A stretch of 64,000 nt of DNA from Aplysia californica (GCF_000002075.1 NW_004797368.1:166485-230484); one strand, 5' to 3'. Numbered from the stretch's first letter, positions 40,035 through 64,000 are shown. The notes: generated by a model not told the origin, from the sequence alone. Made by a program: numbers and translations.

Positions 40035-40194
40035 CTAAGCCAGCATATTCTCCTCGGGAGCCACGGGGATGCTGCACACAGCATCATGCAGGGACTGGAA
40101 GTCCATGCCTGCCTTGAGCACCGCAGGGAACTGACCGTCAGCTGACAGGCTCTCACAGCGGCGCTTGGCCACGGGCTCTCCGTTCACCTCACGC
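40035..40194 (-). CDS. ODC1: ODC last coding exon ([16 protein letters not shown]...[14 protein letters not shown])
   Basis: tcccag| acceptor, phase 2 fits the preceding exon, TAG at 40037-40035. Confidence 0.85.
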
Positions 40195-43100: not shown

Positions 43101-46100
43101 AGCACAATATATGCAGTTTTCTGAGTGGAAAGTTTCTAATACTGATGCGTATCAGGGCTGCCTACTTAGAATTTCCTATTTCAGGTAAATTCAGGGTTAA
43201 TTTTAGGTATCTAGGCTCAAAACAGGGCAGTATTCTAAGGTATCGAATAAAAAAATCTGTTTTATTTCTCCTTCAGTGAATAAAACAACAGGAGATCATG
43301 AAATTTTTTGTGATTTTAGTAAGTTACTGTGACAACTTTTCCTAGGAACAAACCAGTTTCACTAAAAAAATATAAACCACTGTACTATAGTTTTTAAAAT
43401 GCACAGAAAATTGAGGTAGCCAACCTGGTAGCCTACTGGTACTAATACTGAGAGTAATTTGCCATTTACCACCAAAAAAAACCCAACCAAAAACCAAAAA
43501 ACCCCTTTCATTCAGATATGTTTCACATGATCGTCGGTCGTGGCAAGCTGGAATATAATACACGGGATGTGTGTGTGTGTGTGTGAACTTATAATGTATA
43601 AGCACGGGCAGGGGGACACTTATTCGATACCTTAAGAGTACATAGACGAAAAAGAAGGTAAAAAAAAAAAATCGTGTACTCTAATTTTCCTAGATTTACG
43701 CATTCAATTGCCTAATGTTACAACTTCAGAGCATCACTTCTACTTATCTTTTATTTCAGCATCAGTTTCTTTCACCACAGCCTTATCCAGCTGAGGTAGA
43801 ATCCTACTGACAAATTCTCTAGATCTAGACAAATTTGAAAAAGTTTCTGATACTGACTTTCTTTTATGCACTTGCCATTCACATTCCTTAATCAGATTAG
43901 CGCAGATTTTCCAGCCACAGCAAAATCCCAAAAATAGAATGATTTAGGCAGCCCTGGTGTATACACAGAGCAAAGAACACACAAAAACAGCACAGAACAG
44001 TGAGACACAAAGGAGTACAGGTCGATCGCTCACTTCCAGGACAGAAGCCTCCACCTGGGCATGGTCGTACATGAGCGAGTTGAAGGAGCCGTAGACGCCA
44101 TCGTTGACGTAGTACATGTGCGAGGGCTCATCGTTACGCGTCACATTCTGCTGGTGGTGACCATCCACGGATGCTCCTGGATACAACAAATAAACTTTCT
44201 GCTCAAACACCTTCAGTCAAGGCACAGCTTAACAGATCAGCATCTACATTTTTTTAACAGAGTTTGTTATCCACAAACACTATTACGATTAAAAATATAC
44301 CAGACAATAGCAAAAGTGCAGCAGATACCTTTAAAAAAATGTAGGATTGCCTAAGCTAATGGAAAGCTGATCATTTCGATAATTTTGGCAAGCTGTGGTA
44401 TGGTCTTAAGGCCACACATGGGTTTTTGGGGTTCAAACAATGTTTTTTTTGGTTTTGAGAAACTTCCCTTGAAAAGTATATGCTAAATCGAATGGAAGTA
44501 CTCTCTCTTTCAAAGAGATAGCTCCATAAAGTTTGTAACATTGTGAGCCAATACAATGCTTTAGAGTGATTTTGAGACATTTTTGCTCCTTTCCTCAAAA
44601 TGTTCATTTTTTGGCAATATTAATATTTGCAATTTCAAGAAAAGCTAGCGTCATTTTTTAAAGATTTGTGTGCAGATTACAAATATGTAATTAGTTCATA
44701 GGTAACATGGATGGATTTTGAGCTTTTAGCTTTTGAAAATGGTCCTCCAGATAGCCGGTTTCACTTAAATTTGCTATTTCCATCATTATGCAACTGAATA
44801 TATGGTTCCCAAAACTGAATATTTTTAATCCCCGAATGGAATACTTTGAGAAAATGAGAAAAATTGTAGATTTTGGCACTAAGAAGTAGAGTGAGGCCTT
44901 AAGAGGGCAAGATTGTTATCAATACTGTGTCAACAACGGAACTGTCAGCCTTTTTTCTGTTTTGATCGAAATCGATACTATCATGGGCATACCAGAGGTC
45001 AGTTCTTTTCATATGCTGATTGTGAACGTCAAATCTTTCATAAATTTACCCATGTGAAATGAAAAAATGAATTAACCACCTTAGTTTTGTCATGGTCAGA
45101 ATGATCTTAAAAACAAATCAAAATAAGAGATGAAACTCATGTAGAACTCCATAGTGTACTGCTGGCAGGATCAGGTGCAACAACATAAGCCAAGCAGTCC
45201 TTATAAAATAAATCTTTACATTTCTCTACCTGAACTAGACAAGCGTTTGAGTAAAGAGAAGCACATCGACACAATAATGGTCATTTTGTGCTTTTAAAGG
45301 TACCCTATAATTCTGTGACTCACCGCCATTGTCCGAGATGTCTCTGGCCACAGTGCGCTTGGCAATGATGTTGACTGCCAGGGTAAATGCTGAGGCCACG
45401 AAGTAGCGGCCTGGCTCAGCGATGATGCGGACACCGCTCCCCTTCGGGAAGTACATATCCAGTGCCTGGTTCAGCACACTGGCAATCTAAGAACACACAA
45501 ATGAACATGATGTTGTTTTTAAAAAAAGAGAAAAAGAAAATGTGAGGTGGCATGGTGAAATCAGGCGTTCGTCAAATTATGAAATCAAAGAAACTGGCAT
45601 TTTCCCACTTGTTTGGCAATTACTATTTTTTGGCTCAACACTTTTTATGGTCAAAACGTATTTATGCGGCCTCTAAGGACCCCCAAGCTTTGGATGAAAC
45701 TCCGACGGCCGTTTTCTCGCCAAATTTACATATGAAACCAGGCCACCCCTACCTCCTTCGATCGCAAATACCTTGACATCTATTCAAGTTAAATGAGTAT
45801 CTTTTTTTTCCCATTGCAAGCAAAACAAATGAACACGGCCTATAACTCCACATGCCCAAAAATTGACGAGCACCTGATTCCACCTCCAACAACCCACTCA
45901 CAAAAGCTGGCAACAAGAAAACAACATCAAACAAACAATACCATAATTCAATCTTAACCCACAAACATATGGCAAACAAGGGACAAAGAAACAAAGGTGG
46001 CTGAGAACTGCCAAAACACAGACGAGTCTGTTCTCTACCTTTGTGTTTGCCTCCTATAAAATCTCAGGAGTAGTCAGCTTCCGGTTCTTTTTTTTTATAT

Positions 46101-49100
46101 AGTAGAGGGTTTTTCGATGCTCGCAACTGCATACGGTCATATGAGCGCCAAGGGGTGAGTGTAAACAGAGAAATCTTTTCAGGGAATCAGACTTACTCTG
46201 CTCACCTCTTTTGCTTCAACAGCACAAGGCCTGCTTCGACTATCATGGCACCCCGGTAATAGCGAGTCACAAGAGTGTGACAAACATACGAAAAAGAAGT
46301 AGAGGAAATGACAATAGTAAAGATTAGGAAAGAAAAAACAGCAGTTCCATTTTGTAGATCAGGCACAGTTATCAGTGTGACATGAAGAATCAGCCCATTT
46401 ACAATTCTACTGTGCTTGAACGTGAAATGTCCCCCCTTTGGGAATGGCCTAAAGACACTACAGTCAGTGGCACTGCCCAGGGGGGTGCTACTGGTTCTTC
46501 AACCTGCTGTACAACTGACTGTGACACATGTAACAGTTTTTCTTAACCCTTGCTTTCAGACGACCAATTTTTAAAAAAATCTATATTATTAATACTGATC
46601 AGAGTATTTTCAGTTTTGGTAGGAATTAATTTTGAATTTTGCCTGAGTGGTGGCTGAGATCTACTCTTAATTATTTTACAACTACCAAGGGAATCTTGAA
46701 TGTGCGCAACTTGCACATGTCATGGGATTTCAGAGTTTTTCCACTCTAATCCAAGAAGGCTCGGTGTTCTATCTTACCCATCTTAAGATCTCGGGTGTTG
46801 CAGAGATACGCTACCTCAAATCATGAATGGATGAATGGAAAAAGAAAATGTTTCCTGTTAGGTAAATAAACCTCTGAACAAGTACAGTACAAAACAAGTT
46901 TTACCTCCTCGAAAGTAATTGGTGCCGATTTTTGTCCCGGGAAGCCTCCACCGATGTCCAGAAGGGTCATCTCAAAGCCATACGCCTGTGCCATATTCCA
47001 GGCCTCGTAAGCTTGCTTCACAGCACAGGAAAACGCTGCCGCCTCCTCTACGCCACTGCCCACATGGAAACTGTTGAGATGAAGAAACACATTAAATGTC
47101 ATCTCTAAATAAATCAATTCCGAAAAACAGCTACCACACTCCTAGCTTCTCCAGTAAGCACGTTTTAGTGTTTCCAAAAGAGAAAAAAAAAAATGTGAGT
47201 GACATAACCTGAGACATCAAAGGGAAGGAGAATCCTATTGCAAACTAAGTACTGGATTCATGAAGAACACACATATGAAGCTGAAATCGACCGGTCATAC
47301 TTCAATAACAGTCATATATTTCAGTGTGTGACCAACTGATGTCGAGCCCATCATACTGACGTCAAATTCCAGGTTTCCATGAAAGAACATACTTATGTAT
47401 TGCATCTTTGGGGTAAGTGAAATAGTTACTCTTCCATCTTTGAGCCCACCCAGTACAAAAGAGACAAAAGAAATTGAGCATTTTTCTTGCCATAGCCACT
47501 TCTCACTGTGGGGAGACTGAATTACAAATTTCACTGCTGGGCCCACTGATCTAAACACAGGGTTCCTGCCATGAACTTCCCACCAAATTCAAGGAGATTT
47601 CAAGGAGAAATTTTTAAAATTCAAGGAGATTTGGTCAAGAAATTCAAGACGAAAGCCTATTTCCGATAGGCCTTTAATTATCCGAAAGAAATCATAGTTT
47701 CGATTTTCCTACAAAAACTCTGTTCCAGGGTGACTGCCACCCCGGCTTCCTAATTTTCCGGGGGGGGCGGGCGCGCCTCATCCATTTTCCAGGGGCATGT
47801 TACATAACAATGACAGTGTATGCTCCATTTATATATTATACACACAAATGTGCGCATGCAGGTTCATCATATCTAGTCAAAAACATGTCAGTGTGGAACT
47901 GGGGTATTGCGTGACTTAGGCATTTCAGTCTGTTCTTTACTTATTTATATTTTTCCCCTCATCATACTCGCACTATATATATATATATATAAATGAATCT
48001 TGTTTTGAGCCTGAGAAAAGGCCTAGAGCCAGAATATTGACTGTCAAGAACCAGTTTGGGTGTCAAGGTATACACAATAAACATGAAAGACAACTCGAAG
48101 TAGAGTAATAACTTGAATGGCTCAATCACCAACAAAATGAAACGGGAACCCTTTAGTTTAAAATAAAACACGGCTTAAAAGGTTTGAGTATGAGTATGAC
48201 GGATCCCAATTCCACACAAACCCTGCACCAACGCACGCTTTGCAGAGAGCTCGAGATATTGGAGTAGTCAAAATTCAGAAAAGTAAAATCTGCTTCCAAG
48301 TTCAGTTATTGTCATTCGGTGTGTGCTTTCAACCCCATCCCTCGAGTACGTCTTAAAAAAAAAAATCAATAACCCCCCCCCATTCACGAGTACTATACTT
48401 CGTAGCGCTCAAACTTTGAATGAACTTTGGTGACCTCACGCCGATACTCACGATGTGATGCGAACGAAAAAGTTCATTGACCGGTCACGATGGCGGGCCC
48501 GACAAGACGCTTGTATAACTTTCTTTTTCTTTCGGTCTTTTTTTTCCCCACAAGTGACAGCACAGGACAAATGATTTGTTAACCATAGGCAACTGAATTA
48601 AAATGTAGATCTATTTGAAAAAAAACAAAAAAACAACAACAACAAAAAAACAAAGGCACTAAGTAGACTAACAAGCATTTGAGTCAATTTGACACAGTTT
48701 GGACTTGGTGACTAAAAATCCAGTGTTTGTTGCAAGCTGGTGTCTTATAAAAAGATTTCTTTCAACTTAAAACTTGTACATCGATGTTGAGCACGCGCAG
48801 TATTGGATCAAGGAGGCAACACCTTTGCCGCTGTACTGAGCACTCCTGTACAACTGCGGTCCCGTTTGCACTAGTAGTCCCTCTGTAGAGTGTAGATCTA
48901 ACCTGAATTAAAATTATAGCCTAGGCTATCTAATCTAGATCTAGAATCTAGATATCTAAATATGTGTAAATCTAGATTATATCTAGAGATAGACCACAAT
49001 ATTATAATATAGCAGTCATGTAAACAAACGGGACCGCAATTGTACAAGAGTGCCGCGATTTCTTTCTCTCACCAAACGCAAAGTGCAGCAAGCGGTTTGT

Positions 49101-52100
49101 TCAATTTTCTCATGAACTTTTCAAATCGCACCGGCAGCTTCTTTCTCATTCCAGCTCCTTTTATTGTTGCATTCTGCATCAATTTCTCTCCAATTTCCGC
49201 CGTTTTCAATGACAACTCGGCGCGCCAACGTCCCGATGCCCGATCGACACTTTGTTGCTCCACAATAAACAAAGTGAAACTAACGCTAGGCCTGGAAGAA
49301 CGGAAGTAGAAAGCTACGGGCGGACATGCGCAAGCTGCATTTTCGTCCCTCTCCCGGTTCTGTGTTTTCTGCGTGTAAACAAGTATCGCAATTTGCGGCC
49401 GAGAGCGGTCCAGCGGAGGAAGGAGGAAAGTAGCGGGAAAAGCTAGATGAAGCGGAGTTTCCGCTATTTAGCGGGAAAGTGGCAGCTATGTTCAACTTCC
49501 CTGGGCATTCCCGGGTCTTGGCGATTTTTTTTTCAAATTTCCGGGTAATTCCCGGGGAGCCGTCAGTCACCCTCTGTCCGATCTGGCAAAATTCAAGGAG
49601 TTTTTAAGGAGGTTCCTCAAATTCAAGTAGTTTTCAAGGAGATTGTTCCTTGAAAGCAAATTCAAGGAGTTTTCAAGGACTCCCTGAATTCAAGGAGGCC
49701 GCGGGAACCCTGTAAACAGATTAAATCAGGAGAAACTACTGGCATTTACTTCAGAGAGAGACACACTGACCTGATGCCCATCACATTGAGGTCCAGCTCC
49801 TGGGCCTGGGCCAGTAACTTGCCGACGTTGTCCGGGTGGCAGCCAAACTTGTTACCCAGCTCGCACTGCACCTTGAAGTGAGACGTGGGCAGCAAACGCA
49901 GCACCAGTCTGAGAAAGGAAACATTAGATGGCTCAATATGGACGGACAGACACAAAAGTAACAACAATAGCCAAATGGGAAACAACATAAATAGACCTGC
50001 ATGTGAGCCTCAACCAGATTGTCTGAAAATTTTGCGCAACCCCCCCTCCCCCCAAAAGAGCTTCTGTGGGTGTCATAAGGAAGGACTTTTCCGAGTAACG
50101 AGCGACCACCCCAACAAACACAAATAAGAAGAGACCTAACCCTAACCCTAGACCTACCCCAAAAAAGAACCTGCAACGGGCCTCATGTAAAAAGGCCAGC
50201 ACAAGTCCAAAATGGGGGGGGGGGAAAAACCCAAACCCACTCCAAAACAAAGAGCATGCATAATATGGCCTACATCTACATTGCTATAATAGGGTTTGAT
50301 ACAATAACACAATAGAACTGGAATATGAATCCTCCATATATAGATCTAGTAATCTAAATAAATCTAGATCGAGATCTTGCAGAACAAGTGAATAGGAATT
50401 GGCCTTGAACTAGAAATCCGCATCCGATTCCGAACAGAGGGACTCAGCTGAGTATAGATTCTATAAATAATTCACACACCTGATGAAATGCTTTTTACCA
50501 ACATTAACCCTTAGAGTGCTGATCGTGACTGGTGGCGACGGCCCGAACTTCCGCAAAGTGCTGATCGCGACCATAGACACTGGCATATAGTATAACGTGA
50601 TGTACGAAAAGAACGAAGTATTAATTTTTATACTGCTGGCTGGTAGGCTACGCAGAATTGATTTCAGCCGCTATTTTTCTTGTCACCGGGTTCGATCGAG
50701 GCGCGAGGAGTTTTTTGTTTCACTTTTAAGTCGAGTGATAGTGAAGTCGGAAAATTCGCGATTTCGACAAACACGAAAATAGTTGCATTCGATTCAGATG
50801 AAGATGTTCCGCGTATTTTCCTTGAATCAGAAGATGATTTCGAGGGTTTTGATGCTAGAGCTAACACTTTGTGGAATATAACGTAGGCCTATGAAGCATC
50901 TAGACTCGGGTCTAGATCTAGAGATCTAATGAACCGGCAGTTTTTCAGTCATTTCCATCACCACTACTACAACAATAACTTTACAAAATACTTTTTGCTG
51001 AACATATTCAGAAAGAACTTTCAATATTCTAAAACTTTTATTCTTACCTTCATAAGAAATTTTGACAAATAAAAAAGTTATTAGCAAAAGAAAAGCGTAT
51101 GTGCAAATCTGGCGTTTTTCCAAAATAAATTCAGCACAGAGGGAAAATATAAGGGGAAAGAAGTCATCGCTCTAAGGGTTAATATTACAGCACAACCTAT
51201 GATAGGGTTTGACACAATAGAATTGGAATATGAATCCTCCATTGAGGTCTGTAATGATCTATATAAATCTAGATCTAGATTCTATTAGAACAAGTGAGTC
51301 AGACTTGAATGAATCCACACGATCTGAACAATTGAATTTGTCAACAAACGAAATTCAAAATGGCCGCCCGAGCACGAAACTGAAAGTAGATAATTTAGGT
51401 CGTCGTCCTTTTTCGTATTCGCATTTCTACTCGGGTTCCGACAATTGTCGGAAACGCGTCGGCACGAAAACCGAATGGAGAAAAAGGGGGCGCTGGCAGT
51501 CGGCCAGGCCTCGCATTTCGCACATTGACTGATACAGGTGGGCCTAGCAATAGCATCGGCTGGCTCGCGGGTCGGATTTCAGACGATGGCCGGCAAACAT
51601 GCAGGTCTACATAAAGTCCGAAGCTTGGTTTTGGTGGTTGAGTAAAAAGAAGCCCATTAATACAATACTTGTCAGGTGGTAAAACAAAGGAAGACAGACA
51701 CGACAAAAAAGAAGGAAAGAAAAGAAGTAAGACCAACTCCTGGTGCCCTCCAATCAGCAGCTGAAAACCCAACAGACAGCTGGAGGAGCACAGACAGACA
51801 GAAAGGCACAAACGTTATAGTAGTAGCCAAACAGGAAACATCAGAGACAGCATGAGGCAGATATTACCCCATACATATATAAAACAAGTTGTAGAAGCAG
51901 AATCTTAATATGAAACGTTAACCCAACCACTTCCATCTACGTGAAATGAAGGAAGGCAGGATCATCATTAATCTGATACCTGAGGTGTAGCACTAATTAG
52001 ACTAGTCACTCCCAGACTATCATAACCATTTTCTCTCCGTCATTTCAGTTCATGCACAACTTCTTGCCACTCGAGATTAGATCCATAAAGACGGGAAATG

Positions 52101-55100
52101 AGAGCATGCACCTATTAGGCAGCAACGTTGAATGTACCCTGGGCCACTGAGACTCGATATAATACGAGCTTCCAGCAGAGGGAGCATGTTACTATAAATA
52201 ACACTTTAAGTATCGGATCTTACCAAACAGTCAGCTCTTGAACACCATGGACCAACTCCTTGCAACAGAGCCCGGACTGCTGAGAGGAAAAGGGCTGAAC
52301 CTGTACCTCGGGAACACAAACTCTGGAGTCAGTCAGCCCTACAGCCATTACTCACCTGGCACTCGGATAGAGAGCTTTGATCTTGATAAGCTCTGCCTCA
52401 TTGTCGAAGGTCATGAGGTCAACCGACTGCTTGTGGGCATACTTGAGAAAGGACTTCTGCTTGCAGGGGTTGGCGTAGATAATACGGGATGGAGACACAC
52501 CCATCTTGACCACCTGGGATATCTCCGCCTGCAGGGGAGGACAGAAATGAGTGTTCATTTGAATAAAGAGAAGCACACCCACACAACAATGATCATCTAT
52601 GTTAATGTTTTAGTGCCTGTAAAATGGCAACTTGCGCTGTATGTTTCCCTTGAACCTGAGATTGTACCAGAATGCTACTTCAATATAAAGATAATTGGAG
52701 AAAACACTTCCAAACTAAGGCTCCAGTCTCTTATCCCTAACATCACACAGATTCTTCCATATTGCGTACAACCTAAGAAAAGGATAGCTAACAAAAATAA
52801 AAAGTTGTGACTCTTTTTTAATTAAAAATAAATGCGGCCTGCAAAGACAAAATAGATTTTTTAAAAAGTTTTCTTTAAAAAAGCATATGTTTATGAAGAA
52901 ACGTCATTAAAAAAGAATGCAGATTTCTGATTTCAAGCTCTTCGCTTCACACATTGGGTTAACATGCTTTGGAAAGAAAAAACAACAACTTTTTTTTGTA
53001 CTTTCAAGCCTGTACCTGTTCGAAAACTTATTCGAACCATTCTATATGAGTTGATTGGCAATGCAATTTCAAAACACGGTGGCTGCCTGACCAATAAAAA
53101 GTAACAACATCTTCCAATCCCAGCAGAGCAGTGATTGTAAAATAATTCATCATTCCACAATTTTGTTTCTTCCAAAAAATGATAATACTGACTCCTTGCA
53201 ATTGCAGTACATCATGTAGACAAAAAAAGAGAAAATCTTCAAAAGGATTTGAAAGACGCTTCGACTGGCATATAAGATCTTTGCGACTCATGAGCCGATC
53301 CAAACACTTCCACATTGGGCAAATAGGGGGAAGTCAGAAAAAACATGTAACATATGTGGGTCAGCTTATCTCTAGATTTCTGTTTTGTTTGTTTTCAAGA
53401 CGTATTGGGTACAACTGTAGTAGATCAGAACAATGAGCTTGAATGAAAAAGGTGAAACTGCCACTATTCGGGGGTAAGTTTAGATCTAAATAGAACTAAC
53501 CAGAAGTCTGCACCTCAAGTGCTTTCTGTCATCACGCATGTTAGTATTCCAGATAACAGACAGACATAGATAAGAATAGCTTGGATGTTCTGACTAACTC
53601 AGGAGTGGAGGAAAGGAAGAAGCAGGGGCCAAGAGCACCTCTGGGATTTTGTGAAAATACTTGTAAAGTTATGAAGTTACACTGGCAAAAAAAAAACCAA
53701 AAAAAAGAATGAATAGAAACAACTAATATGCAGTTAAAAGAAAACAAATGTGTCACAATGTGGAGGAATCAGGCTCTCGTTAATGTTGGGGTATGTAGAA
53801 TTATTGGCATCATCTTAAAGCTTTTTTCATTTGTCTTGCTTTGGATGAAAAAAACAACAACCATATATCTAGAATACAAGTCGAGATATTAGCGAAAGAA
53901 AGAGGTGTAAAATAAGTGAGAAAATGGCTGCCAAAAAGTAATTTATTTCCTTAACTTGAGAGTCCGTAGAAACAGAAAATTTACACCTTTTTACCTTAAA
54001 TCATTGATCTTAAGTAAAATCCACAAAGAAATGTTTTTTAATTTAAAACCCCTCCCCCATAAAAATACAGAAATCTGCTGAAAAATGCCAGTTTCTTCAC
54101 TTTGACTATTTTGACAAGGGTCCAATTTAACCACAATGCCTCACAAATGCAAAGAATTACCGTTTTTCAAGTGAAAGTAACAAAAATAACTGGGAGAAAA
54201 AACCAAAACAAATGGCATTCCAGGAAGCCTGGCCAAGCCTCACCACTTACCTTACTAGCACAGTCAAAGCCCATGCCAAGCTCGGCCAACAGCTTCACAA
54301 CAGTCTCATCTTGATTGCACTTCACGGCTGGCAGACAGAACAGAACAAAACACATCCCTTTTAATACAGAAGACAAAATCAATTAAAAATTTTTTTAAAA
54401 ATATTTTACACGAAAGACATAAAATCATGACCTGGCTATATAACCTCAACTTTCCACATTTTGCTTATTGTTGTTCCTTTTTACTCCCTATCATAGACAT
54501 TAAGTCACAAACATGAAAATAGTTTGGTTTATAAATTTATAAATCCACAATATATTATGTGAATCGGGAACACAATTCGAAAGGGTTCAACAAGTCTTAT
54601 AGAGAATGCTCCTGTATTTGGTGGCTTTTGCCATTATAGAAATGTAGCCAACTGTATCATCATAAAGTGTGAGCTTAAGGCCCGATACACTACAATGTTA
54701 CTTAGAAGGCGGGTTCCAAATTTATCATCCACCCTCAAGTGAAAGAAGAGCCCAGAAAACGTCCTAAACAACCGAAGTTCTAATACACATCGTTGGGGTT
54801 GTAAACAAGGGTCACAACTGCTGTAGCACCACAGAATACCATCCAAACATTTTTGGTGTCCTTGTATCACAAAGTGTGTGTGCAGAACAATTCTGATAGG
54901 ATGATGATGATGATGTCGCAGGAGAAGATGACTTTGACTTAAGATCACGTTGGATGTGCGAGCAAAAGGCTAATTCTGATATTTAGTGACAGTAGGATCA
55001 CCAAAAATTTGTCCCCCCCCCCAAAAAAAGGGGGAAAGTCCCTAAACAAAATGAAAAACAAGTGGCTAGTTCAATGTGATTGTAATTTTTATCAATCCCT

Positions 55101-56737
55101 TTGGCAATACTACAAGAATATGAGGGGATGTACAGGGAGGGCTTTACCACATGTAACTTCTGACATAAGCCTGACAAGTGACATCAAAACAGACACACAT
55201 GAGCAACAAGGCAAAATGAAAATGCTCCTCACCATAGAAAGGCTCCACCCGAGGCAGCAGCTCCTTCCACTTGACAAACTTGCCCACAACGTCGCCCAGA
55301 TCAGCGATGAAGAACGCTTCATCACAACCCTGCAAAGAGAGGGGGAGATTATTTGGGTTTGGGTAAAGGGAAGCACATCAAGACAAAAGACAATGCCAAC
55401 CATTTAATGCAGGGAAAAAGCAAGACAGGTAAATATGATCAAAAGATGGAAAAAAAAACAGAAGTAAAACCCACCTATGGCAATGCCCTCCAACATACCA
55501 CTGCAAACATGACTCAAGGGACCTCCTGAACTAGCCCACAACCACATATGTTCACACTGCACACACAGCAGTCAAAGGGAACAAAGGAGGAATGCCAACA
55601 AGGGGATAACAGGGAAACGCACGGCGCTTCAATCCAGACTGATGGCAATACAATGACCTGTAAAGACAATTTTGCCACCGACTACATCTCAACCACTCAG
55701 TGTAAGATTGTCATACATCAATCACTCTTTTCAAAATGGCGTAAAGTAGTCTTACACTGAGCAATTTATCTGCTGAACCATAGCAGTCCTACACCCTACA
55801 CATCAAAAGTAGGAACTTTAGGATCAAATCCCTCTTAATTTATCCAGCAGCCGAGGAACCCCCCCCCCCCCCGTTTTGAACAATACGAAATATTGTGTTA
55901 AGAACTCANNNNNNNNNNNNNNNNNNNNNNNNNNNNNNNNNNNNNNNNNNNNNNNNNNNNNNNNNNNNNNNNNNNNNNNNNNNNNNNNNNNNNNNNNNNN
56001 NNNNNNNNCCCCCCCTCCCGTTTGAACAATACGAAATATTGTGTTAAGAACTCACTCCTTATCTATACATTTCATTTCTCTATCACCACAATCTAAATGA
56101 GTCTCAAACAATACAATCTAATCATACACTAAACACCAATTGCCTGTGAACATCTTTAACTTTCACCAAGACATAATATAAAATGAATATCCTATGCCAG
56201 AATCTCATGTCAGACTTCTCAAGTACACCAATGGTTCTTCTCACCAGCTACACTGAATCTTACTTTCAATCACCAAACTTTGTTTATGGAAAGTAGCTCT
56301 CAAAAAGCAAACAATAATGAACAGAATCCAAAACAGACTAAAAGTGTTGCTGCACAGGAAAGAGAACATTTTCTGTCTTTTCAGTCATTAACACCCCCAA
56401 ACAACAGGTCAAAGAAAGACCCTTTTAGTTCATTCAGGCATTATTGGTACATACACTGCAATTCCCAAAAGAGAGAATGGATACAACACACGAGATCAGC
56501 AAGACAGAGTTCAAATCCAATGTTTCACCGTTAGTGCAGCACAGGTTCAAATGTGAAATCTTTATAACTATGAAACCCAGAAAAAAACACTACACCCTCT
56601 CTGCAGGCCATTGTTCTTGTTCTGTCCCTACTCACTTGGGCATCCAGTTCCTCAATCTTTTCCTTCACCAGAGCGGCCACGTTCGGCGCGTCGGCCAGGG
56701 TCTCGACACAACTCTCGTTCTGGGGACTGGTCTTCAT
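40035..56737 (-). CDS. ODC1: Ornithine decarboxylase, complete 475-aa CDS in 10 exons (1428 nt including stop)
   Basis: PFYAVKCN (PLP lysine), [74 protein letters not shown] (catalytic Cys), MGAYT..STFNG. All phases are consistent. Confidence 0.96.
40301..41126. mobile_element. ~820-bp Tc1/mariner-pogo-type nonautonomous element, copy 2 (last ODC intron)
   Basis: CAGTGGAATCC ... GGATTCCACTG; colinear with 32290-33110. Confidence 0.82.
42437..42645 (-). CDS. ODC1: ODC exon ([20 protein letters not shown]...MGAYT...STFNGMPRP...)
   Basis: acccag| ... |gttagt, 209 nt. Confidence 0.94.
43153..43956. mobile_element. hAT-like MITE, TIR CAGGGCTGCCTA, 6-bp near-TSD
   Basis: gcgtat|CAGGGCTGCCTA ... 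TAGGCAGCCCTG|gtgtat. Confidence 0.78.
44034..44176 (-). CDS. ODC1: ODC exon (...[22 protein letters not shown]...)
   Basis: atccag| ... |gtgagc, 143 nt. Confidence 0.93.
44410..44898. mobile_element. TTAA-target MITE (Kolobok-like)
   Basis: ttaa|GGCCACAC ... GTGAGGCC|ttaa. Confidence 0.6.
45324..45486 (-). CDS. ODC1: ODC exon ([10 protein letters not shown]...[23 protein letters not shown]...)
   Basis: tcttag| ... |gtgagt, 163 nt. Confidence 0.94.
46905..47070 (-). CDS. ODC1: ODC exon (FHVGSG...LDIGGGFPG...TFEE)
   Basis: caacag| ... |gtaaaa, 166 nt. Confidence 0.94.
47558..49712. mobile_element. Nonautonomous DNA transposon with CAGGGTTCC TIR, subterminal TTCAAGGAG repeats and 6-bp TSD TAAACA
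   Basis: taaaca|CAGGGTTCC ... GGAACCCTG|taaaca. Confidence 0.88.
49771..49908 (-). CDS. ODC1: ODC exon (LVLRLLPT...NKFGC...LNVMGI)
   Basis: tctcag| ... |gtcagt, 138 nt. Confidence 0.93.
50508..51178 (+). mobile_element. piggyBac-like nonautonomous element, TTAA TSD
   Basis: ttaa|CCCTTAGAGTGCTGA ... TCATCGCTCTAAGGG|ttaa; internal acidic frame [21 protein letters not shown] resembles a transposase N-terminal remnant. Confidence 0.75.
52356..52528 (-). CDS. ODC1: ODC exon (AEISQVV...IIYANPCKQ...MTFDNEAEL...YPSA)
   Basis: ctgcag| ... |gtgagt, 173 nt. Confidence 0.94.
54251..54327 (-). CDS. ODC1: ODC exon (AVKCNQD...GFDCASK)
   Basis: tgccag| ... |gtaagt, 77 nt. Confidence 0.94.
55233..55329 (-). 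CDS. ODC1: ODC exon ([15 protein letters not shown]...LPRVEPFY)
   Basis: ttgcag| ... |gtgagg, 97 nt. Confidence 0.93.
56636..56737 (-). CDS. ODC1: ODC first coding segment ([34 protein letters not shown]); the exon starts at 56801
   Basis: ATC-ATG-A at 56737; donor gtgagt; acceptor tttcag| before 56801; 102 nt, phase 0. Confidence 0.88.
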
Positions 56738-57551
56738 GATCAAACACTCAGAAGGTCTTGCACAAACAAACTTTAACACAAATCAGGGTTGTACAAACAG
56801 TCTGAAACACAAGAGAAAGAAATGGGTTTTTAGTGGAAGTTTTCATTATTCCTTGTGGTTTCCCACAACTTTACAAATAAAATTTCTGAACCTGTCTGCT
56901 CTTTCAAGAAATTATAATTTCAGTTGTCAGTGGAACATGTGTATGCAGTATCATTACCACTATAAGAAAACAGCCAGGCCTCAACAAGTCTCCCCTCTCT
57001 TGCCTAAACCAGTCTCATAAGCCCAACCTCTAAAACCACTAGGTAAAAGAAATCCCAGTGAACTAAAGATGGATGTGCATTTTCTAAAGCAGGACTGACC
57101 ATAATAAGAAAAAAGTAGTAGTCTATTCAGAATATATTAAATTGTCATGTCTGATATCCAAAACAAAAGCCACAAGAGAGGCAGGTCAACAGAAAGCACT
57201 AACCAAAAAACAAAAACAATTGTTGCATGAAGGCATAGGTAGCTGTAAGCTGCAAATGTTTCAGGTTGTATTCACAGGACACACTCTAGATATGTCCATT
57301 TCTTCCGCCCGATATATACTGACCCTGTATGATGATGTGTCACAATTTTCAAATGTTTTTAGGTTCTAATCTCAAGACTGCTTTGACTTTCAACTTTCAT
57401 AGCTATAGACACATGGGTCTGAAGACTGGCTCAGACTAACTCTTAGAAAAAGAGGCTAATCTAAGTCAGCCAAGGGTGAGCTCATATAACATGACAATAA
57501 GGTCCACAACAATGTCTTACCTGGCCAAGAAACGTCTGCCCTTAGCAAATA

Positions 57552-57653
57552 CTAGCTGGGATCCCACGGTGGCTCTGCGTTGAAGTTGAACTTACGCTTG
57601 ACGCGGCACACGGCCTCCGGACACTCGATGTGGAACACAAGGGAACTACTGCC
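57552..57653 (-). CDS. uCC regulatory uORF, part 2: GSSSLVFHIECPEAVCRVKRKFNFNAEPPWDPS*
   Basis: gttacag| acceptor; the leader exon 57653-57521 ends CAG|gtaaga; C-terminus matches the AZIN1/ODC uCC motif FNAEPPWxPS*. Confidence 0.92.
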   Translation of the reverse strand, partial: GSSSLVFHIECPEAVCRVKRKFNFNAEPPWDPS

Positions 57654-59039
57654 CTGTAACACAATACAAAGAACAAAAGAGATGAGAAATTCGTTCCTTG
57701 AAGTTTAGACTTTGTCAGAAACATTAATTGCATTTCACAAGAAACCAAAAGCAACACTGGGAGTAGCAGAAGGAGCATAGACAATAGTCCACAAGAGCAC
57801 ACATCATCCAACCAACTTCATTAAAAAATAGTTTGTTTCAATTTTCAACACCCCTTTTTAATTCTATATTAATTATAGGTTCAATGAAGGCAGGACCCCA
57901 ACTTTAATTTCCATCACAAGCATAGTCAAGCAAATGGTCAAGCGCTGTAAAACAATCATCAAATTTTTAAAAAATAAATTTAAAAAATAGAGAAAACAAG
58001 CTGTATACAGTGCTTACACTAGCTGAAACTGAAAAGTAAAGAAAATTCTGCCGGGGGTCCAGGGACAGCGCCCCGGTGAGGATTCAGGGGGCGAAGCCCC
58101 CGAAGAAATTTAAATTTAGTACTTTTAGAGGGTTGAAAATGGCATTTGGGAGCCTGTTTGAAGAGATTGTCAACAACTCATACTACCTATTTTTTTCACC
58201 AAGATTTTGTCTTGTTTGATTTCTTCACCAAAATATCTTTCCATTGCTGGCAATGGTTAAAAGCAGGTTCCCCTTCCATTGCTACTATAATTCAATTAAT
58301 TTGTCATCGCACCATTGATAGAAGGCAAACCTGGGAGTAATACTGTTATGAATAGATATGTACCTTTACAATACAGTTACCCAGCGTAAACCCTAATTTT
58401 CCTCAAATTTCATGTCTGAATGTCGTATGTCACAACCTCTGAACACCACTTCGAACTATTCTTGACTTTAGTAGTTTTGGCACACATTTCTTTCATCGCG
58501 GCCCTTATCGTGTTCCCGTGCCGTAGAATCTTCGCATTGATAATTTCTCTAGATCTAGACAATAAATTTGCAAAGGAGTTTCTTTCTGACAGTAATTTTC
58601 TTGTCTTAATTAAGATCACAAGTCAATATACTTGATCGCCCCCTCACCTCAGATGAGAGGCCTTCAATATGAATTCGGAGTGTTTATTCGTACCATTGTG
58701 TGAAAAACTATCTGGTTATCCGCACAATATTGTTGTACGAATAACTGCCACTAGTTATCCGTACAATACCAAGCTCCCACAACCTTGGCCTTGGCCGGGG
58801 CCTATTTGCACGAAACAACAAGTTTTGACGAAAACGGAAACGCGATATTTTGCGCGGGATTGCTCACGCTCAATGGCCATGGGTACTGGGCACACTGGAC
58901 CGGTGGGTGCCAAACTGACTCGATCAAGCTGAGCAGTGTCTGACTGAAGTTTTGATGAGATTTCAGACAGGATGTCTTCGTTACGGTGATACATGTACAA
59001 TTTACTGTTGCGTGTAACTGGGGCTTGAAATATATATAT

Positions 59040-60667
59040 CAGGGTTCCTGCCATGAACTTCCCATCAAATTCAAGGATGTTTCAAGGAGAAATTTTTAAA
59101 ATTCAAGGTTTGGTAAAGAAATTCACGAAAAAAGCCAATATTTCGATAGGCCTACATTTGTCGGAAAGGAATTGTATCATAGTTCCGATTTCCAACAAAA
59201 ACTGTTCTCAGGGTGACTGCCAACCCGGCTTTTCAATTTTCCAGATGGGCTCATCCATTCCCCAGGGGCATGTTACATAACAATGATAGTGCATGCTCCA
59301 TTTATATTTCATATTATATACACACACACACACACATGTAGGTACATTATATCCAGTCAACAACATGTCAGTGTAGGCACTGGGATGTGGTGTGACTTAG
59401 GTATTTCAGTCCGTTCTTATACCTATTTTTATATTTTCCTCTCATGATATTCGCCTATATAAACTATATAAAAATGAATCTTGCTTTGAGCCTGAGAAAA
59501 GGTAAAGAACCAGAATATCGACCGTCCAGAACCAGTTTGGGAACCAAGTTTTATAATAAACGTGAAAGACATAAATTATAGCTCAAACTCAAAGTAGTGT
59601 AATAACATGAATGGCTCAAGTAGACCTGTTCAGTGTGAGAGGTGTAAGAACTAATTGTGGGAGGGCAAGATGCAGTGACACTGAAAATCTGCGAATCTTG
59701 AACAGAAAGCTAAAATATAGAATATAGTTCAATACATATAATTTACTACCACATGCCCAATGAAACGGGAACCCAATACCTTTAGTTAAAGAAACTACAG
59801 CTTACAAGGTTTGAGTGAGACAGATCCTGATTCTACACAAGGCCTGCACCAACGCACGCTTTGCAGAGAGATCAAGATCTAGATTTAGATCTAATAACTA
59901 ATAGCAATTAAAATTTAGTAAAGTAAAATCTGCTTCCAAGTTCAGTTTTTGTCATCCGGTGTTGACTTCAACCCCATCCCCGCGTGCGTCTTAAAAAAAA
60001 AAATCAATAATACCCACATTCCCAAGTCCTATACTTCGCAGCGCTCAGACTTTGCATGAACTTTGGTGACCTCAACCATCGTGATACTCACGATGTGACG
60101 ACAACGCACAGGTTCAATGAGCGGTCACGATGGCGAGCCCGACAAGAAGCTTCTTGTATAATTTTTTTTCTTTCTTTTCTTTTCACAAGTGACAGCACAG
60201 GACAAATGATTTATTTTCATGACGACACCGTGTTTGTAACGCAGAACCTGCATGTTACAAAAGTGGCGTTATCAGACTACTAGGCCCAACAGGCAAATTT
60301 CTGGGCGGTAGCGAAAGCAGATCTTGATTTTCCTGATCGAGCTTCGGTATCGCACATATACACTTCCACTAGTTGACGCCATAACCGCCTGTGCGTGGGT
60401 AACATACTCTGGGGCCCGGAAAAGCCGAATTAATATTCTATCACAATCGCAACCGGCAAAAATTAACTCAGGGGCCCCCGGGATTCCCGGGGCCTGGCAG
60501 TCAACATGTGTTCCTGTCCGAATCTGGCAAAATTCAAGGGGGTTTTCAAGGACATTTTTTCTTGAATGTAAGTAAATTCAAGGAGTTTTCAAGGAGATTT
60601 TTCCTTGAATGCAAATTCAAGCAGTTTTCAATGACTCCTTGAATTCAAGGAGGCCGCAGAAACCCTG
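59040..60667. mobile_element. Second copy of the CAGGGTTCC element, inside the uCC intron; TSD not retained
   Basis: CAGGGTTCCTGCCATGAACTTCCC ... AATTCAAGGAGGCCGCAGAAACCCTG; internally colinear with 47558-49712. Confidence 0.85.
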
Positions 60668-62015
60668 CCCACCCCGCAATTGTTATTCGCCGGTCTTGAC
60701 CCCAAGAGAAGGGGGTTTCTGGGGGGCAAAAATATGGTGGGGGGGTTTCAGGGGGGCATGCACCCCTGAATTTTACCATAATTTTAATTTGATGTTTTGC
60801 AGTTGTTAGCTTTGCTTGCCATGGATCAAGGCAACGTATAGAGATCTAGATCTAGATCTAGGATATAGAATCTAGATCTAGATCTAGGATATAGAATCTA
60901 GATCTAGGCTCAAATAAGGGGGGTGGGAACTACCGAAAAAGCGCTGAAAAATGGAAGTCTTGTTTCCTGACAATCCTTTCGAGCTCCTCATGTCTAAGTG
61001 AGTCAATTTCTTCTATAATTTCATGGACGAACATCAAAAGCTACGAACTTGGCGTGTTTTGAACGAGACGTATGCCTCGATTAGGAACCAACGCAGGCGG
61101 TTCAAGAAGAAGGCCACAAACGCACACAAACTCAAGCAGACTGATGCACACACACTTGACCTACATGAATGGGGATCTGACTCGGAACCCGAATTTCACG
61201 TAAGATGAAGTGCGGTGCGCGTGCGCTGAGCCAGGGGCTACACTGATTCGGGACCAGAACGAAGGCAAGGTGCCGAAAAGGCTTATCGGGCGACATAAAC
61301 CCGGCCCCCGCAGGATGAGGGTTAAGCTACATATTCGCCACACTGTTTCAGGAAAGGCAACTCGACATAGATCAAGATGTAGAGATCTAGTTTTTCTAGG
61401 CCTCTTTGAACATAAGCCGACCACCACTAGATCTACTCCGGTAGAAAGGGGGGGGGGGAAAGAGGGGGTAGATAGATAGGGGGTGCCTGCTAAGCTAAAG
61501 TCACAAAAATAATAGAGATAGATGGAAAGCTAGGCTAAAGATCTTCTAGTTAGATCTCATTTGCAACAGATTTTAGTGCCAGGTGGTCTGCTAATCTTCA
61601 ATTTTACACTTTTTCTACAACAAAGAAACTGGGAAACATGGGGGTGGGGGGTGTATCAATGAGGCGGCGGGCATCGGATCGGCAGACAAGACAAGGTGTG
61701 GGGGAAACTAAAAAAAATGGCAGAAAATTGGAAGCACTGAGCGTTAGATCTAGATATCTAGATCTATAGACTATAGAACGAAGACACTTCCTTTTTCTGG
61801 ACCTTTTTTATTCAGACGAGTCCAAATATGAAAAAATGTTTTTCGGACTCGAGACCGAATAAAGACGGTGCTAAACATCAAATTATGGTAAATTTCAGGG
61901 GGCATGCCCCCCTGAACCCCCCCCCAATATTTTTATTAGGTCAGGGGGGCAACCTGAAACCCCCCTACTCTTGGGGCCAAAACCAGCGAATAACAATTGC
62001 GGGGTGGGAACTACC
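60668..62015. mobile_element. Element with long (~120 bp) imperfect terminal inverted repeats; left end clipped by the adjacent CAGGG element
   Basis: CCCACCCCGCAATTGTTATTCGC..CCCCAAGAG at 60668 is inverted at ~61970-62008 (CTCTTGGGG..GCGAATAACAATTGCGGGGTGGG). Confidence 0.7.
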
Positions 62016-62303
62016 GAAACAGTGCCAACTAAATTATAAATAATTTCAACAAAACCACTTACCCAGAAGTAAACTAACATTTATGATTAACACTGTAACC
62101 GACTAAATTCCTTGGTATTTTTTTACTTTCCCTCCCGTCTCACACTCAGCTACCAGTTGTCTATTTTCTACTAGATCTAGCACAGTGGCTATTCTCATCC
62201 GGGGTGAGAATAGAAAAACGATCTACCTCTCACCCCGGGTGAGAATTGCCAGCGTAGGCTATTCTCACCCGGTGCGAAACAAGACCTGCTTTTCCTCATT
62301 TTG

Positions 62304-62720
62304 GAATACTGTCTATCGGTGTGGATGATCCAATTGATAAAAGCCAATAAAAAATTACGTTATAGCACAAAAGTAAGCTAATTTGATCGTCTTCAAAGAT
62401 GCTATGGCTATTTCACTGTTCAAATCGAGCCGAACTACGCGGGTCGCCATTTTGTTTTGCCCGGAAGTTCTCGCAAGATCTACTCCTCCCCTATCTCTCT
62501 CTCTCTGTCTCTTTCTGAATACTGTCTATCGGTGTGGACGATCAAATTGACCAAAACAAAGTTAAAAAATGATGTCAAAACACAAAAGTAAATAAATTTG
62601 GTTGTCTACAAAGATGCTACAGCTATTTAACTTTTCGAATCGAGCCGAACTACGCGGGTCGCCATTTTGTTTTGACCGGAAGTTCTCGCGCTACTCCTCT
62701 CTCTCTGTCTTTCTCTCTCT
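62304..62720. repeat. Tandem duplication of a ~213-bp unit
   Basis: GAATACTGTCTATCGGTGTGGA starts at 62304 and 62517; both units contain CGAGCCGAACTACGCGGGTCGCCATTTTGTTTTG.CCGGAAGTTCTCGC. Confidence 0.85.
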
Positions 62721-63615
62721 CCACTGCCCACAGACAAAATTGTACGCTTTTAGTAGGCTAGGCTACAGTTGTGATGGAACGTTTGTTCACGGCACAGAAT
62801 TCTACAATGTTTCTGTTATCGCAGTGTAGAATTCTGTNNNNNNNNNNNNNNNNNNNNNNNNNNNNNNNNNNNNNNNNNNNNNNNNNNNNNNNNNNNNNNN
62901 NNNNNNNNNNNNNNNNNNNNNNNNNNNNNNNNNNNNNNNNNNNNNNNNNNNNNNNNNNNNNNNNNNNNNNNNNNNNNNNNNNNNNNNNNNNNNNNNNNNN
63001 NNNNNNNNNNNNNNNNNNNNNNNNNNNNNNNNNNNNNNNNNNNNNNNNNNNNNNNNNNNNNNNNNNNNNNNNNNNNNNNNNNNNNNNNNNNNNNNNNNNN
63101 NNNNNNNNNNNNNNNNNNNNNNNNNNNNNNNNNNNNNNNNNNNNNNNNNNNNNNNNNNNNNNNNNNNNNNNNNNNNNNNNNNNNNNNNNNNNNNNNNNNN
63201 NNNNNNNNNNNNNNNNNNNNNNNNNNNNNNNNNNNNNNNNNNNNNNNNNNNNNNNNNNNNNNNNNNNNNNNNNNNTCTGCAGCAAACAACAGTACAGCAG
63301 TTTGACCCCTGAAACAGTGCATCTGTGTGCGGGAGTGAAAGTAAAAATTTACCAATTCCTTAATAACGCCTGTATTAATGAGTGATCAAGTGTATCAACA
63401 AATGAACAGGCGTTTTCATCAATATCAGGATCAAAATTGTAAGTCATGACATTGGTCTGCTAAGAAGTCACACCTGAACAATCATGCGTGTTCGACAAGG
63501 CTAACTGTTCGGTGGCGAACGATTTTTTACCGGTCTGATATTATACGATACAGATACAGAGAGTGTGTATAATTCTGGTGCCAGACTGATTCAAACATAT
63601 TATTACAACACTTAC

Positions 63616-63663
63616 CTCCACAGAAGCTTCAGACCAAGCTTCTTTTTCTTTTAACGACGGAAT
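63616..63663 (-). CDS. uCC regulatory uORF, part 1: AUU-initiated (I/M)PSLKEKEAWSEASVE
   Basis: Minus strand reads CGCAAAA ATT CCG TCG TTA AAA GAA AAA GAA GCT TGG TCT GAA GCT TCT GTG GAG|gtaagt; exactly 16 codons, phase 0, consensus donor. Confidence 0.85.
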
Positions 63664-64000
63664 TTTTGCGGCTTTACGGCCTAGTCAGAAGGAAAAACTT
63701 GACATAAGGGCCATGGGTGTTCTCTGGTTTACTTCACACGCTGGGTACGGCCACCATATGATTAGAAAGGACTGAGGATTGCCAGGTTCATGGCAACTTT
63801 ATCAATAAAATAATTTGACATTGCCAAATAAGCAAAATCAAAAATAAACTGTAGGTATCAATCTACTTGCAAGTTTACTCTCTTTTATGACCATTGACTG
63901 CTTTCATTATTCATGGTTTTTTATGTCTGAGGCAACAACTGTGCATTACAATTAGTGTGAAATGTATTACATTAGTGACGATAGGTTTACATATAGTGTG

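Follow-up and report, generated by a model that had tools for sequence, protein, structure and literature searches.

The window analysed here, a 64,000-nt stretch of the Aplysia californica genome (NW_004797368.1:166485-230484), carries on its minus strand a gene for ornithine decarboxylase (ODC), whose coding region (40035..56737) consists of 10 coding exons with a GT-AG intron between every pair. The first of these (56737-56636) opens with an ATG at 56737-56735 that has A at -3, and is followed by exons 2-4 (55329-55233, 54327-54251 and 52528-52356), 5-7 (49908-49771, 47070-46905 and 45486-45324) and 8-10 (44176-44034, 42645-42437 and 40194-40035). When joined, the ten exons translate exactly to a protein of 475 amino acids (P0155), which is the NCBI entry "ornithine decarboxylase [Aplysia californica]"; a search of protein representatives with one exon gave no close full-length match, and the named Aplysia protein was reached via P0006. 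Pfam domains PF02784 and PF00278 are present, as are matches in the PDB. The original prediction had taken this main ORF for a true ODC, and it proved to be one: the product scores 452 bits against mouse ODC versus 344 against AZIN1 and keeps the motifs AVKCN (Lys69), HVGSG, GGGFPG, EPGRY and GPTCDG (Cys360). These scores and the retained catalytic and PLP-binding motifs rule out that the main ORF is AZIN1.

Upstream of the ODC start, the mRNA leader is spliced, also on the minus strand. Exon 1 (63616..63770) combines non-coding leader, AUG uORFs included, with codons 1-16 of the reading frame that is the subject of this study, and is separated from exon 2 by a GT-AG intron (57654..63615) of 5,962 nt as written. 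The length of this intron is uncertain, as it holds an assembly gap, an N run at 62838-63275 that lies wholly within it and begins 340 nt past the donor. The junction between exons 1 and 2 was read from the loose ends of RNA contigs matched to exon 1 alone. Contigs from three studies, X5 (3212 nt), X10 (1144 nt) and X14 (792 nt), cover exon 1 with a match that ends at 63615, and their loose ends, reverse-complemented, match the opening 30 letters of exon 2, counted from 57652; the exact exon cut is ambiguous by one base because the G at 63615 is the same as the G at 57653. Since the contigs of all three studies run from exon 1 into exon 2, the predicted join of 63616 to 57653 is confirmed at the RNA level and is in frame regardless of what the gap contains. 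Exon 2 ends at 57521 with the donor ccag|gtaaga, and exon 3 begins at 56801 after the acceptor tttcag|ACT. The predicted splice between them is deduced from orthologous mRNAs, which align colinearly and without gaps, and from RNA-like runs that contain only 0.24 of the words of 56600-57700, which is the share expected of exons.

The 5' end of the transcript could also be placed. In one set of raw polyA RNA reads (X21, sense strand), 22 reads end their match at 63770 and continue into about 11 loose letters ending in GGGG, presumably a template-switch or UMI tag. The RNA contigs reach 63754 (X5), 63743 (X14) and 63708 (X10), and RNA depth is zero upstream of 63776 as well as in the intron from 63376 to 63600. 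Transcription thus likely starts mainly near 63770 and, to a minor extent, near 63735. Eleven reads of one raw-read library continue into A-rich letters directly after 63663, and these are presumably products of internal oligo-dT priming.

Within this leader lies an AUU-started frame of 49 codons plus stop, spliced across two exons, which corresponds to the upstream conserved coding region (uCC) known from ODC homologues. Its first part (63616..63663) extends from the ATT at 63663-63661, which stands in the context gcaaaaATTccg with A at -3, through codons 2-16 to the donor GAG|gtaagt; the exon 1 share is thus 16 codons, encoding IPSLKEKEAWSEASVE, with 63616 as the final exon base. The second part (57552..57653) starts at the acceptor ttacag|GGC at 57653 and comprises codons 17-49, that is 33 codons ending in ...FNFNAEPPWDPS, and a TAG at 57554-57552. 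The C-terminus therefore reads ...NFNAEPPWDPS-TAG, with the PPW codons at 57572-57564, D-P-S at 57563-57555 and the stop directly after. Upstream, an in-frame TGA at 63687-63685 shuts the frame 8 codons 5' of the ATT, which is the first near-cognate codon downstream of that TGA. The original prediction had described this frame as split between 63663-63616 and 57653-57521, and its coordinates, splice sites and stop were all reproduced from the sequence. Two further points of that description were borne out: reading through the spliced leader, no ATG occurs between the ATT and the main ODC ATG (56737-56735), and 95 nt separate the uCC stop from that ATG, so that the two frames do not overlap. 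The distance from the AUU to PPW, put earlier at about 130 nt, measures 129 nt from the A of the ATT to the start of PPW. Because of its non-AUG start and its division by an intron, a frame of this kind is invisible to standard annotation and escapes it.

Conservation was assessed in 12 orthologous mRNA contigs, representing 10 distinct orthologues, from which Aplysia californica's own records were excluded; by tree, they belong to euopisthobranch and stylommatophoran gastropods, a cephalopod and a bivalve. The uCC frame was found in 12/12 of these contigs. The ATT and the A at -3 are invariant across all mollusc orthologues, and every contig (12/12) ends the frame in PPWDPS-stop, within the extended pattern (F/L)(N/D)FNA(E/D)PPWDPS-stop. 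Past the in-frame stop, the ATT is the sole conserved in-frame near-cognate codon; the bivalve contig has an additional in-frame ATG 6 codons 5' of it. In the gastropods and the cephalopod the uCC is 46-49 codons long, and its indels are multiples of three only. The frame evolves as coding sequence. Over its full length dN/dS is 0.11-0.45, falling to 0-0.12 in the last 16 codons, where identity at the three codon positions is 92/100/76% and codons for Ala, Pro and Asp vary synonymously. Codons 1-5 have 92% nucleotide identity, the middle segment has 62% with triplet indels, and conservation is strongest at the last 12 residues and the stop. Both expectations placed on relatives of Aplysia, an invariant ATT and PPW/PS-stop and a synonymous bias among changes, were thus realised. 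The ATT-to-PPW distance ranges from 105 to 129 nt among orthologues, which rules out tuning to a precise multiple of the ribosome footprint, and the spacer from the uCC stop to the main ATG is 64-122 nt. In a starfish ODC-like gene an upstream frame ends in LDFNLEPEWDPS-stop, which indicates homology across phyla, and PEWDPS-stop is found in the starfish homologue. The mollusc-wide comparison can be read as a natural mutagenesis map, in which the AUU with A at -3 and NFNA-E/D-PPWDPS-stop are fixed, and the middle segment, together with the length within the 46-49 codons seen in gastropods and the cephalopod, is free.

The uCC is not the only conserved part of this leader. An AUG mini-uORF in the uCC frame (63685..63714) ends at the TGA mentioned above (63687-63685) and has its conserved ATG at 63705-63703 (MSSFSF-stop), with an additional in-frame ATG at 63714 in Aplysia. 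In Aplysia as in 7 euopisthobranch orthologues, the conserved ATG precedes the ATT by exactly 42 nt, and the mini-uORF region is 80% identical versus 38% for the leader upstream of it; among the orthologue leaders compared, the mini-uORF is absent from the stylommatophoran, cephalopod and bivalve contigs. From the mini-uORF stop to the ATT runs a spacer of 21 nt (63664..63684) that provides the context of the start codon, A at -3 included, and has 88% identity to close orthologues. A further uORF (63734..63757), consisting of an ATG, 6 codons and TGA (MVAVPSV-stop), is out of the uCC frame and sits downstream of mapped 5' ends; its ATGGTGG motif recurs at a similar position in several orthologues.

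Directly after the uCC stop begins a block of 58 nt, the first 31 nt of which form the end of exon 2 (57521..57551) and the last 27 nt the start of exon 3 (56775..56801). It has 95.6% identity to 7 orthologues and no codon periodicity, and the adjoining leader is about 40% identical in the same species in which the block is about 96% identical. Its core, GGCCAGAnTGTTTGTA, straddles the exon 2|3 junction and occurs also in the cephalopod contig. Three of the 5 substitution types in the block are synonymous in frame 0. Read-through or extended coding was rejected nonetheless, given the missing periodicity and orthologues with a 1-nt insertion (L001), an in-frame TAA (L010) or a frameshift (L013). 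An RNA structure of the block or the leader was likewise rejected: neither the block nor the whole leader gave a stable fold (single-sequence z-scores of +0.2 to +1.0), alifold yielded a weak consensus (-7.4), pairing with the AUU region did not surpass that of shuffled sequences, and Rfam gave just one match, a sub-threshold snoRNA located on the wrong strand. The mini-uORF and the block are two conserved parts beyond what the original prediction had found. It is a tentative suggestion, with the balance somewhat against it, that they are functional parts of a polyamine switch additional to those described for the AZIN1 uCC. The fraction of ribosomes at the AUU that are competent to initiate could depend on the mini-uORF, and the block may possibly govern termination, ribosome release or reinitiation after an arrested uCC, or recruit a trans-acting factor or decay pathway.

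The uCC of vertebrate AZIN1 mRNA was reportedly the subject of work by Ivanov, Loughran & Atkins in 2008 and Ivanov et al. in 2018, and this sensor is said to have been first described in 2008. According to a later account, the uCCs published in 2008 come from six animal phyla, where those of ODC homologues end in Pro-Ser, have two adjacent prolines near the end and mostly a putative AUU start (PMC2811004). Repression by the uCC of AZIN1, the only case for which such regulation is known, is enhanced by spermidine and depends on its C-terminal peptide (PMC2811004), and PPW pausing, eIF5A and ribosome queuing have been described for it (PMC9082881, PMC8705083). The Aplysia frame lies in the leader of an ODC mRNA, starts at a non-AUG codon in good context, ends in PPW and Pro-Ser, shows coding conservation at its C-terminus and, as the RNA contigs of three studies and the 5' ends near 63770 establish, is present in mature mRNA. 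The sequence-level predictions made for it came out as expected, and its overall reading as a uCC-class element is supported. We consider it likely that the feature is the uCC of the Aplysia californica ODC mRNA, orthologous to those of animal ODC homologues and AZIN1, and that it would provide polyamine feedback. The class of mechanism is not new, and the Aplysia element appears as a member of the published uCC class; the splice and transcription-start evidence and the comparison of 10 mollusc orthologues are added here. For Aplysia californica, a classic model of neurobiology, this means that ODC is very probably under AZIN1-type translational polyamine feedback acting on the enzyme's own mRNA.

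The resemblance to the AZIN1 uCC includes the AUU in good context, the leader of an ODC-family mRNA, the C-terminal PPW followed by x-Pro-Ser-stop and, further upstream, conventional AUG uORFs whose positions are conserved. The logic expected for the two is also alike, with polyamines acting via eIF5A, a pause and queue, increased AUU initiation and a decrease of the main ORF (PMC2811004, PMC9082881, PMC8705083). There are differences as well: the Aplysia main ORF is a catalytically intact-looking ODC, whereas AZIN1 is an inactive, antizyme-binding paralogue; the Aplysia uCC is split by an intron of ~6 kb; its AUU lies 43 codons from PPW rather than about 30 as in AZIN1 (PMC9082881); and a near-invariant non-coding block of 58 nt follows its stop. 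The uCCs of invertebrate and fungal ODC mRNAs, to the extent that the 2008 bioinformatic set of Ivanov et al. is represented in a later source (PMC2811004), are of the same class as the Aplysia uCC.

By homology to AZIN1, a mechanism can be proposed in which most scanning ribosomes would pass the weak AUU and translate ODC. High polyamines would interfere with eIF5A, so that ribosomes on the uCC would pause at PPW and probably also at Pro-Ser-stop, and trailing ribosomes could queue back over the ~130 nt to the AUU, holding scanning complexes near it. Such a queue would raise AUU initiation, leave fewer ribosomes to reach the ODC AUG and lower ODC synthesis, thus closing a negative feedback loop. 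Initiation at the AUU is suggested by its conservation and by AZIN1, and AZIN1 is likewise the model from which polyamine responsiveness and PPW pausing are inferred. More speculatively, the mini-uORF and the 58-nt block would probably tune the switch, with the number of ternary-complex-loaded ribosomes reaching the AUU, termination, reinitiation and mRNA decay as candidate points of action. Against the AUU model stand the varying ATT-to-PPW distance, the reads that turn A-rich right after 63663 and up to three AUGs 5' of the AUU in the mapped transcript, owing to which many ribosomes may reach the AUU by reinitiation; ribosomes only 21 nt past a stop may be poorly competent to start there.

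Other explanations of the leader have to be weighed. The uCC could be translated and repress ODC constitutively, as an inhibitory uORF with a hard-to-terminate Pro-Ser end, and polyamine feedback would then operate only via antizyme. The AUG uORFs of the same leader could indeed repress in a constitutive manner, but the invariant PPW, PS-stop and weak AUU are the parts needed for spermidine-dependent repression in AZIN1 (PMC2811004, PMC9082881), and a plain inhibitory uORF needs neither a conserved non-AUG start nor a conserved peptide across mollusc classes, which makes this reading unlikely. Less likely again, in our judgement, is that the AUG mini-uORFs and the 58-nt block, for instance as a protein or small-RNA site, are the main regulators, with the AUU frame rarely used and its conservation partly at the RNA level. 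Within the close clade, conservation of the block (95.6%) and of the spacer and mini-uORF (80-88%) does equal or exceed that of the coding part, and codons 1-5 are conserved also at third positions. The last 16 codons, however, behave as coding sequence (position 2 at 100% versus position 3 at 76%, with dN/dS at most 0.12), the peptide end is kept in the cephalopod, the bivalve and the starfish, all of which lack the mini-uORF and have a largely diverged block, and no RNA structure was supported.

Purifying selection on the peptide would also fit a free-standing micropeptide of 49 residues acting in trans, its location before ODC being incidental or serving co-expression. The poorly conserved middle combined with conserved last 12 residues and stop is instead the pattern of a nascent-peptide arrest element; moreover, the start is a weak AUU and uCCs are always located in leaders of the ODC family (PMC2811004), so that we regard a micropeptide as highly improbable. 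Finally, the assembly gap between the two pieces could suggest a chance open frame made by joining unrelated sequences, an explanation with next to no probability: it is refuted by the RNA contigs of three studies that join the exons, and chance is excluded because none of the 12 orthologous mRNA contigs lacks the frame. A polyamine-responsive uCC is thus the reading that we prefer.

Among other translational polyamine sensors, the uORFs of AdoMetDC (AMD1/SAMDC) mRNA are similar in being polyamine-responsive nascent-peptide uORFs in an mRNA for polyamine synthesis, and that of mammals encodes MAGDIS. They differ from the uCC in having an AUG start, in being much shorter and in containing no PPW, and we know of no queue-dependent start-site selection at these uORFs. 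The 'short' uORF of plant AdoMetDC ends in Pro-Ser, as the uCC does (PMC2811004). The +1 programmed frameshift of antizyme, which occurs in molluscs (PMC1874602), is another translational polyamine sensor of the same homeostatic circuit; unlike the uCC, it is not a uORF but a recoding event inside a coding sequence, stimulated by polyamines and yielding more of a negative regulator.

Elsewhere in the genome, a gap-rich stretch of 10 kb upstream of a tandem ODC-like paralogue yielded no uCC. A pattern search for PPW-x-P-S-stop returned one further exact PPWDPS-stop, on C214; chance alone would give about one such match, and the genome-wide search recognised no ODC-like gene there. A second uCC was rejected on this chance-level match and on the DNA of uCC exon 2, which is single-copy in the genome.

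The frame studied here is the uCC (upstream conserved coding region) of an mRNA read from the minus strand, whose main ORF, judged by its sequence, encodes ornithine decarboxylase (ODC) and not an antizyme inhibitor. Pfam assigned the exon translations to PF02784 and PF00278. A representative search with one exon returned P0006, and a homologue search with P0006 led to P0155, the 475-aa NCBI protein 'ornithine decarboxylase [Aplysia californica]', which matches the exons of the window at 100%. Splice-aware reconstruction yielded ten GT-AG coding exons (56737-40035), the joined translation of which equals P0155 exactly. That the gene might instead encode an inhibitor like AZIN1 (vertebrate antizyme inhibitor 1) was ruled out by comparison with solved structures, in which P0155 scored 452 bits against mouse ODC and 344 bits against AZIN1, and by the retention of the ODC motifs AVKCN (Lys69), HVGSG, GGGFPG, EPGRY and GPTCDG (Cys360).

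Within the leader of this mRNA, the uCC starts at an ATT (63663-63661, minus strand) whose context, gcaaaaATTccg, has A at -3, and runs for 16 codons to the donor GAG/gtaagt, whose last exon base is 63616. It resumes in the same frame after the acceptor ttacag/GGC at 57653 for 33 further codons, closing with ...FNFNAEPPWDPS and a TAG at 57554-57552. A second leader intron follows (donor ccag/gtaaga at 57521, acceptor tttcag/ACT at 56801), and the ODC ATG (56737-56735) lies 95 nt 3' of the uCC stop in the spliced leader, in which no ATG occurs between the ATT and the main start. Upstream, the frame is shut by an in-frame TGA (63687-63685) located 8 codons 5' of the ATT, which is the first near-cognate start codon 3' of that TGA. 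All coordinates and counts of the original prediction proved right when re-read from the sequence of the window.

The predicted junction of 63616 with 57653 was recovered from RNA. Four A. californica sequencing runs were mapped to 63276-64000, and three of them (X5, X10 and X14), from separate studies, provided contigs of 3212, 1144 and 792 nt, respectively. These three runs behave as RNA, since the share of words of 56600-57700 found in them (0.24) equals the fraction of that stretch occupied by exons 2 and 3. Their contigs cover exon 1 and cease to match at 63615, and the reverse complement of the 30 unmatched letters at the contig ends reproduces exon 2 from 57652 on without a difference; thus, the two exons are joined in the predicted frame in mature RNA, with one base of uncertainty in the cut, since 63615 and 57653 are both G. 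In the mapped runs, no RNA depth was seen in intron 1 (63376-63600) or upstream of 63776. The run of N at 62838-63275 falls wholly inside intron 1, 340 nt beyond the donor, and a single transcription unit spans this gap, with its two sides in the order and orientation written, the length of intron 1 alone being uncertain. The putative 57521/56801 junction is supported by a gap-free alignment between the spliced leader and orthologous mRNAs.

The 5' end of the transcript can be placed with a fourth run, X21 (raw polyA RNA), in which 22 sense-strand reads cease matching at 63770 and continue into about 11 added letters ending in GGGG; three more reads cease at 63735 in the same manner. We infer that the added letters are template-switch or UMI tags at capped 5' ends, and if so, exon 1 would extend from approximately 63770 to 63616. 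Eleven raw reads of the same run pass from exon 1 into some 25 or more A directly after 63663, at the short A run preceding the ATT, which probably reflects internal oligo-dT priming or, less likely, a short polyadenylated product. Beside the gap, a 66-nt segment (63288-63353) carries RNA reads, mostly of the plus strand, and short contigs with loose ends on both sides in each of the four runs; either a small exon belonging to a plus-strand transcript or an expressed repeat within ODC intron 1 could account for it.

For comparison with other species, we used mRNA contigs encoding ten orthologous ODCs, seven of which grouped with Aplysia in a euopisthobranch clade in a quick maximum-likelihood tree, with one each beside the stylommatophoran Bradybaena, an octopus and a unionid bivalve. 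An upstream frame ending in (F/L)(N/D)FNA(E/D)PPWDPS-stop is present in all 12 contigs whose leader is long enough, 64-122 nt from uCC stop to main AUG, and runs colinear with the join of exons 1 and 2 in Aplysia (...SVE/GSS...). As had been predicted, the ATT and the PPWDPS-stop are kept in all orthologues, the bivalve included, and change is biased toward synonymous sites, with synonymous substitutions visible at Ala, Pro and Asp codons among the last 16; the A at -3 is likewise kept in all. Relative to Aplysia, dN/dS (Nei-Gojobori) was 0.11-0.45 over the whole uCC and 0-0.12 over its last 16 codons, where identity by codon position was 92/100/76%; the middle (codons 6-33) is just 62% identical. 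Length is 46-49 codons in the gastropods and the cephalopod, with indels only in multiples of three. Such a pattern is the mark of an arrest peptide that is translated and depends on its C-terminus. In the bivalve contig, about 100 codons of the frame are free of stops, and an in-frame ATG lies six codons 5' of the conserved ATT; the bivalve uCC may start at an AUG. In the starfish Patiria miniata, a frame upstream of an ODC-like gene (L026:8620-8754), 1.25 kb 5' of the CDS, ends in LDFNLEPEWDPS-stop, which argues for homology of the uCC across phyla; there, PEW replaces PPW, the second proline being Glu, a natural variant of the putative stall motif.

uCCs of this kind have been described in the leaders of ODC homologues from animals of six phyla and several fungal groups (PMC2811004, on Ivanov, Loughran and Atkins 2008). 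The animal members share a Pro-Ser end and two adjacent prolines, most seem to start at AUU in good context, and the AZIN1 uCC acts as a repressor of its main ORF, an effect that is strengthened by spermidine and requires the C-terminal peptide (PMC2811004). Work from 2018 (summarised in PMC9082881 and PMC8705083) showed that polyamines cause eIF5A-dependent pausing at PPW and that the ribosomes queued behind the pause increase initiation at the upstream AUU. The splicing, frame, conservation and gene identity support the original reading of the Aplysia frame as a uCC of the ODC leader and, because every sequence-defined feature of the family is present, an AZIN1-type mechanism is the best explanation for it. 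By analogy, initiation would occur at the AUU, ribosomes would pause at PPW in a polyamine-dependent, eIF5A-linked manner, and the queue behind them would raise AUU initiation and repress ODC synthesis. The distance from the A of the ATT to the start of PPW, which is 129 nt in Aplysia and varies across the orthologues (105-129 nt), leaves space for about four ribosomes and is not kept at a fixed multiple of the footprint.

From its mapped 5' end to the AUU, the leader contains three ATGs. One, at 63757, opens a 7-codon uORF out of the uCC frame; the others belong to a mini-uORF in the uCC frame (63685-63714, minus strand; MSSFSF-stop), with its ATG at 63705, an extra Aplysia ATG at 63714 and the TGA at 63687-63685 as its stop. 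In Aplysia and all seven euopisthobranch orthologues, the ATG at 63705 lies exactly 42 nt and the stop 21 nt before the ATT (M-x-x-F/Y-S-F/S-stop); the leaders of the stylommatophoran, the cephalopod and the bivalve have no such mini-uORF. In AZIN1, too, the uCC is accompanied by conventional uORFs whose positions are conserved (PMC2811004), and the Aplysia mini-uORF parallels these.

A 58-nt block directly after the uCC stop, spanning the exon 2/3 junction (57551-57521 and 56801-56775, minus strand), shares 95.6% identity with the seven close orthologues; identity is only 38-40% in the leader flanking the conserved core on both sides, and synonymous sites of the uCC differ by 32-69%. A coding function was excluded, and the block is thus non-coding, because identity by codon position (98/95/94%) shows no periodicity, one orthologue has a 1-nt insertion, and distant orthologues have a stop or frameshift. 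Neither a stable or covarying RNA structure nor a matching Rfam family was found for the block, the core of which, GGCCAGAnTGTTTGTA, is kept in the cephalopod. The block might control how ribosomes terminate or reinitiate once the uCC has arrested, bind a factor, or carry signals for splicing.

This kind of uCC is already known, from bioinformatics in 2008 and mechanistically from 2018, and its occurrence in the Aplysia ODC leader adds an orthologous, unannotated member from a mollusc ODC mRNA and is what a specialist would expect. A full-text literature search for Aplysia, ODC and uORF returned nothing relevant; Aplysia or Mollusca may already figure in the 2008 data set, and any novelty would lie solely in the mini-uORF and in the invariant block after the stop.

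Elsewhere in the 927-Mb genome, the sole other exact PPWDPS-stop, with about one expected by chance, closes an AUG-started 11-codon frame, MSRATPPWDPS-stop (G000:C214:147597-147629, minus strand), near which no ODC-like gene was recognised. A tandem ODC-like paralogue lies on the same strand about 56-65 kb past the high end of the window (G000:C98:286534-295100, minus strand). The 10 kb upstream of it, a stretch rich in gaps, yielded no PPW frame. The exons found are 40-70% identical, HVGSG is changed to HEGSL, and GGGFPG, EPGRY and GPTCDG are retained; this may be an inactive, antizyme-inhibitor-like copy. Another ODC-like exon was located at G000:C262:756820-756996.
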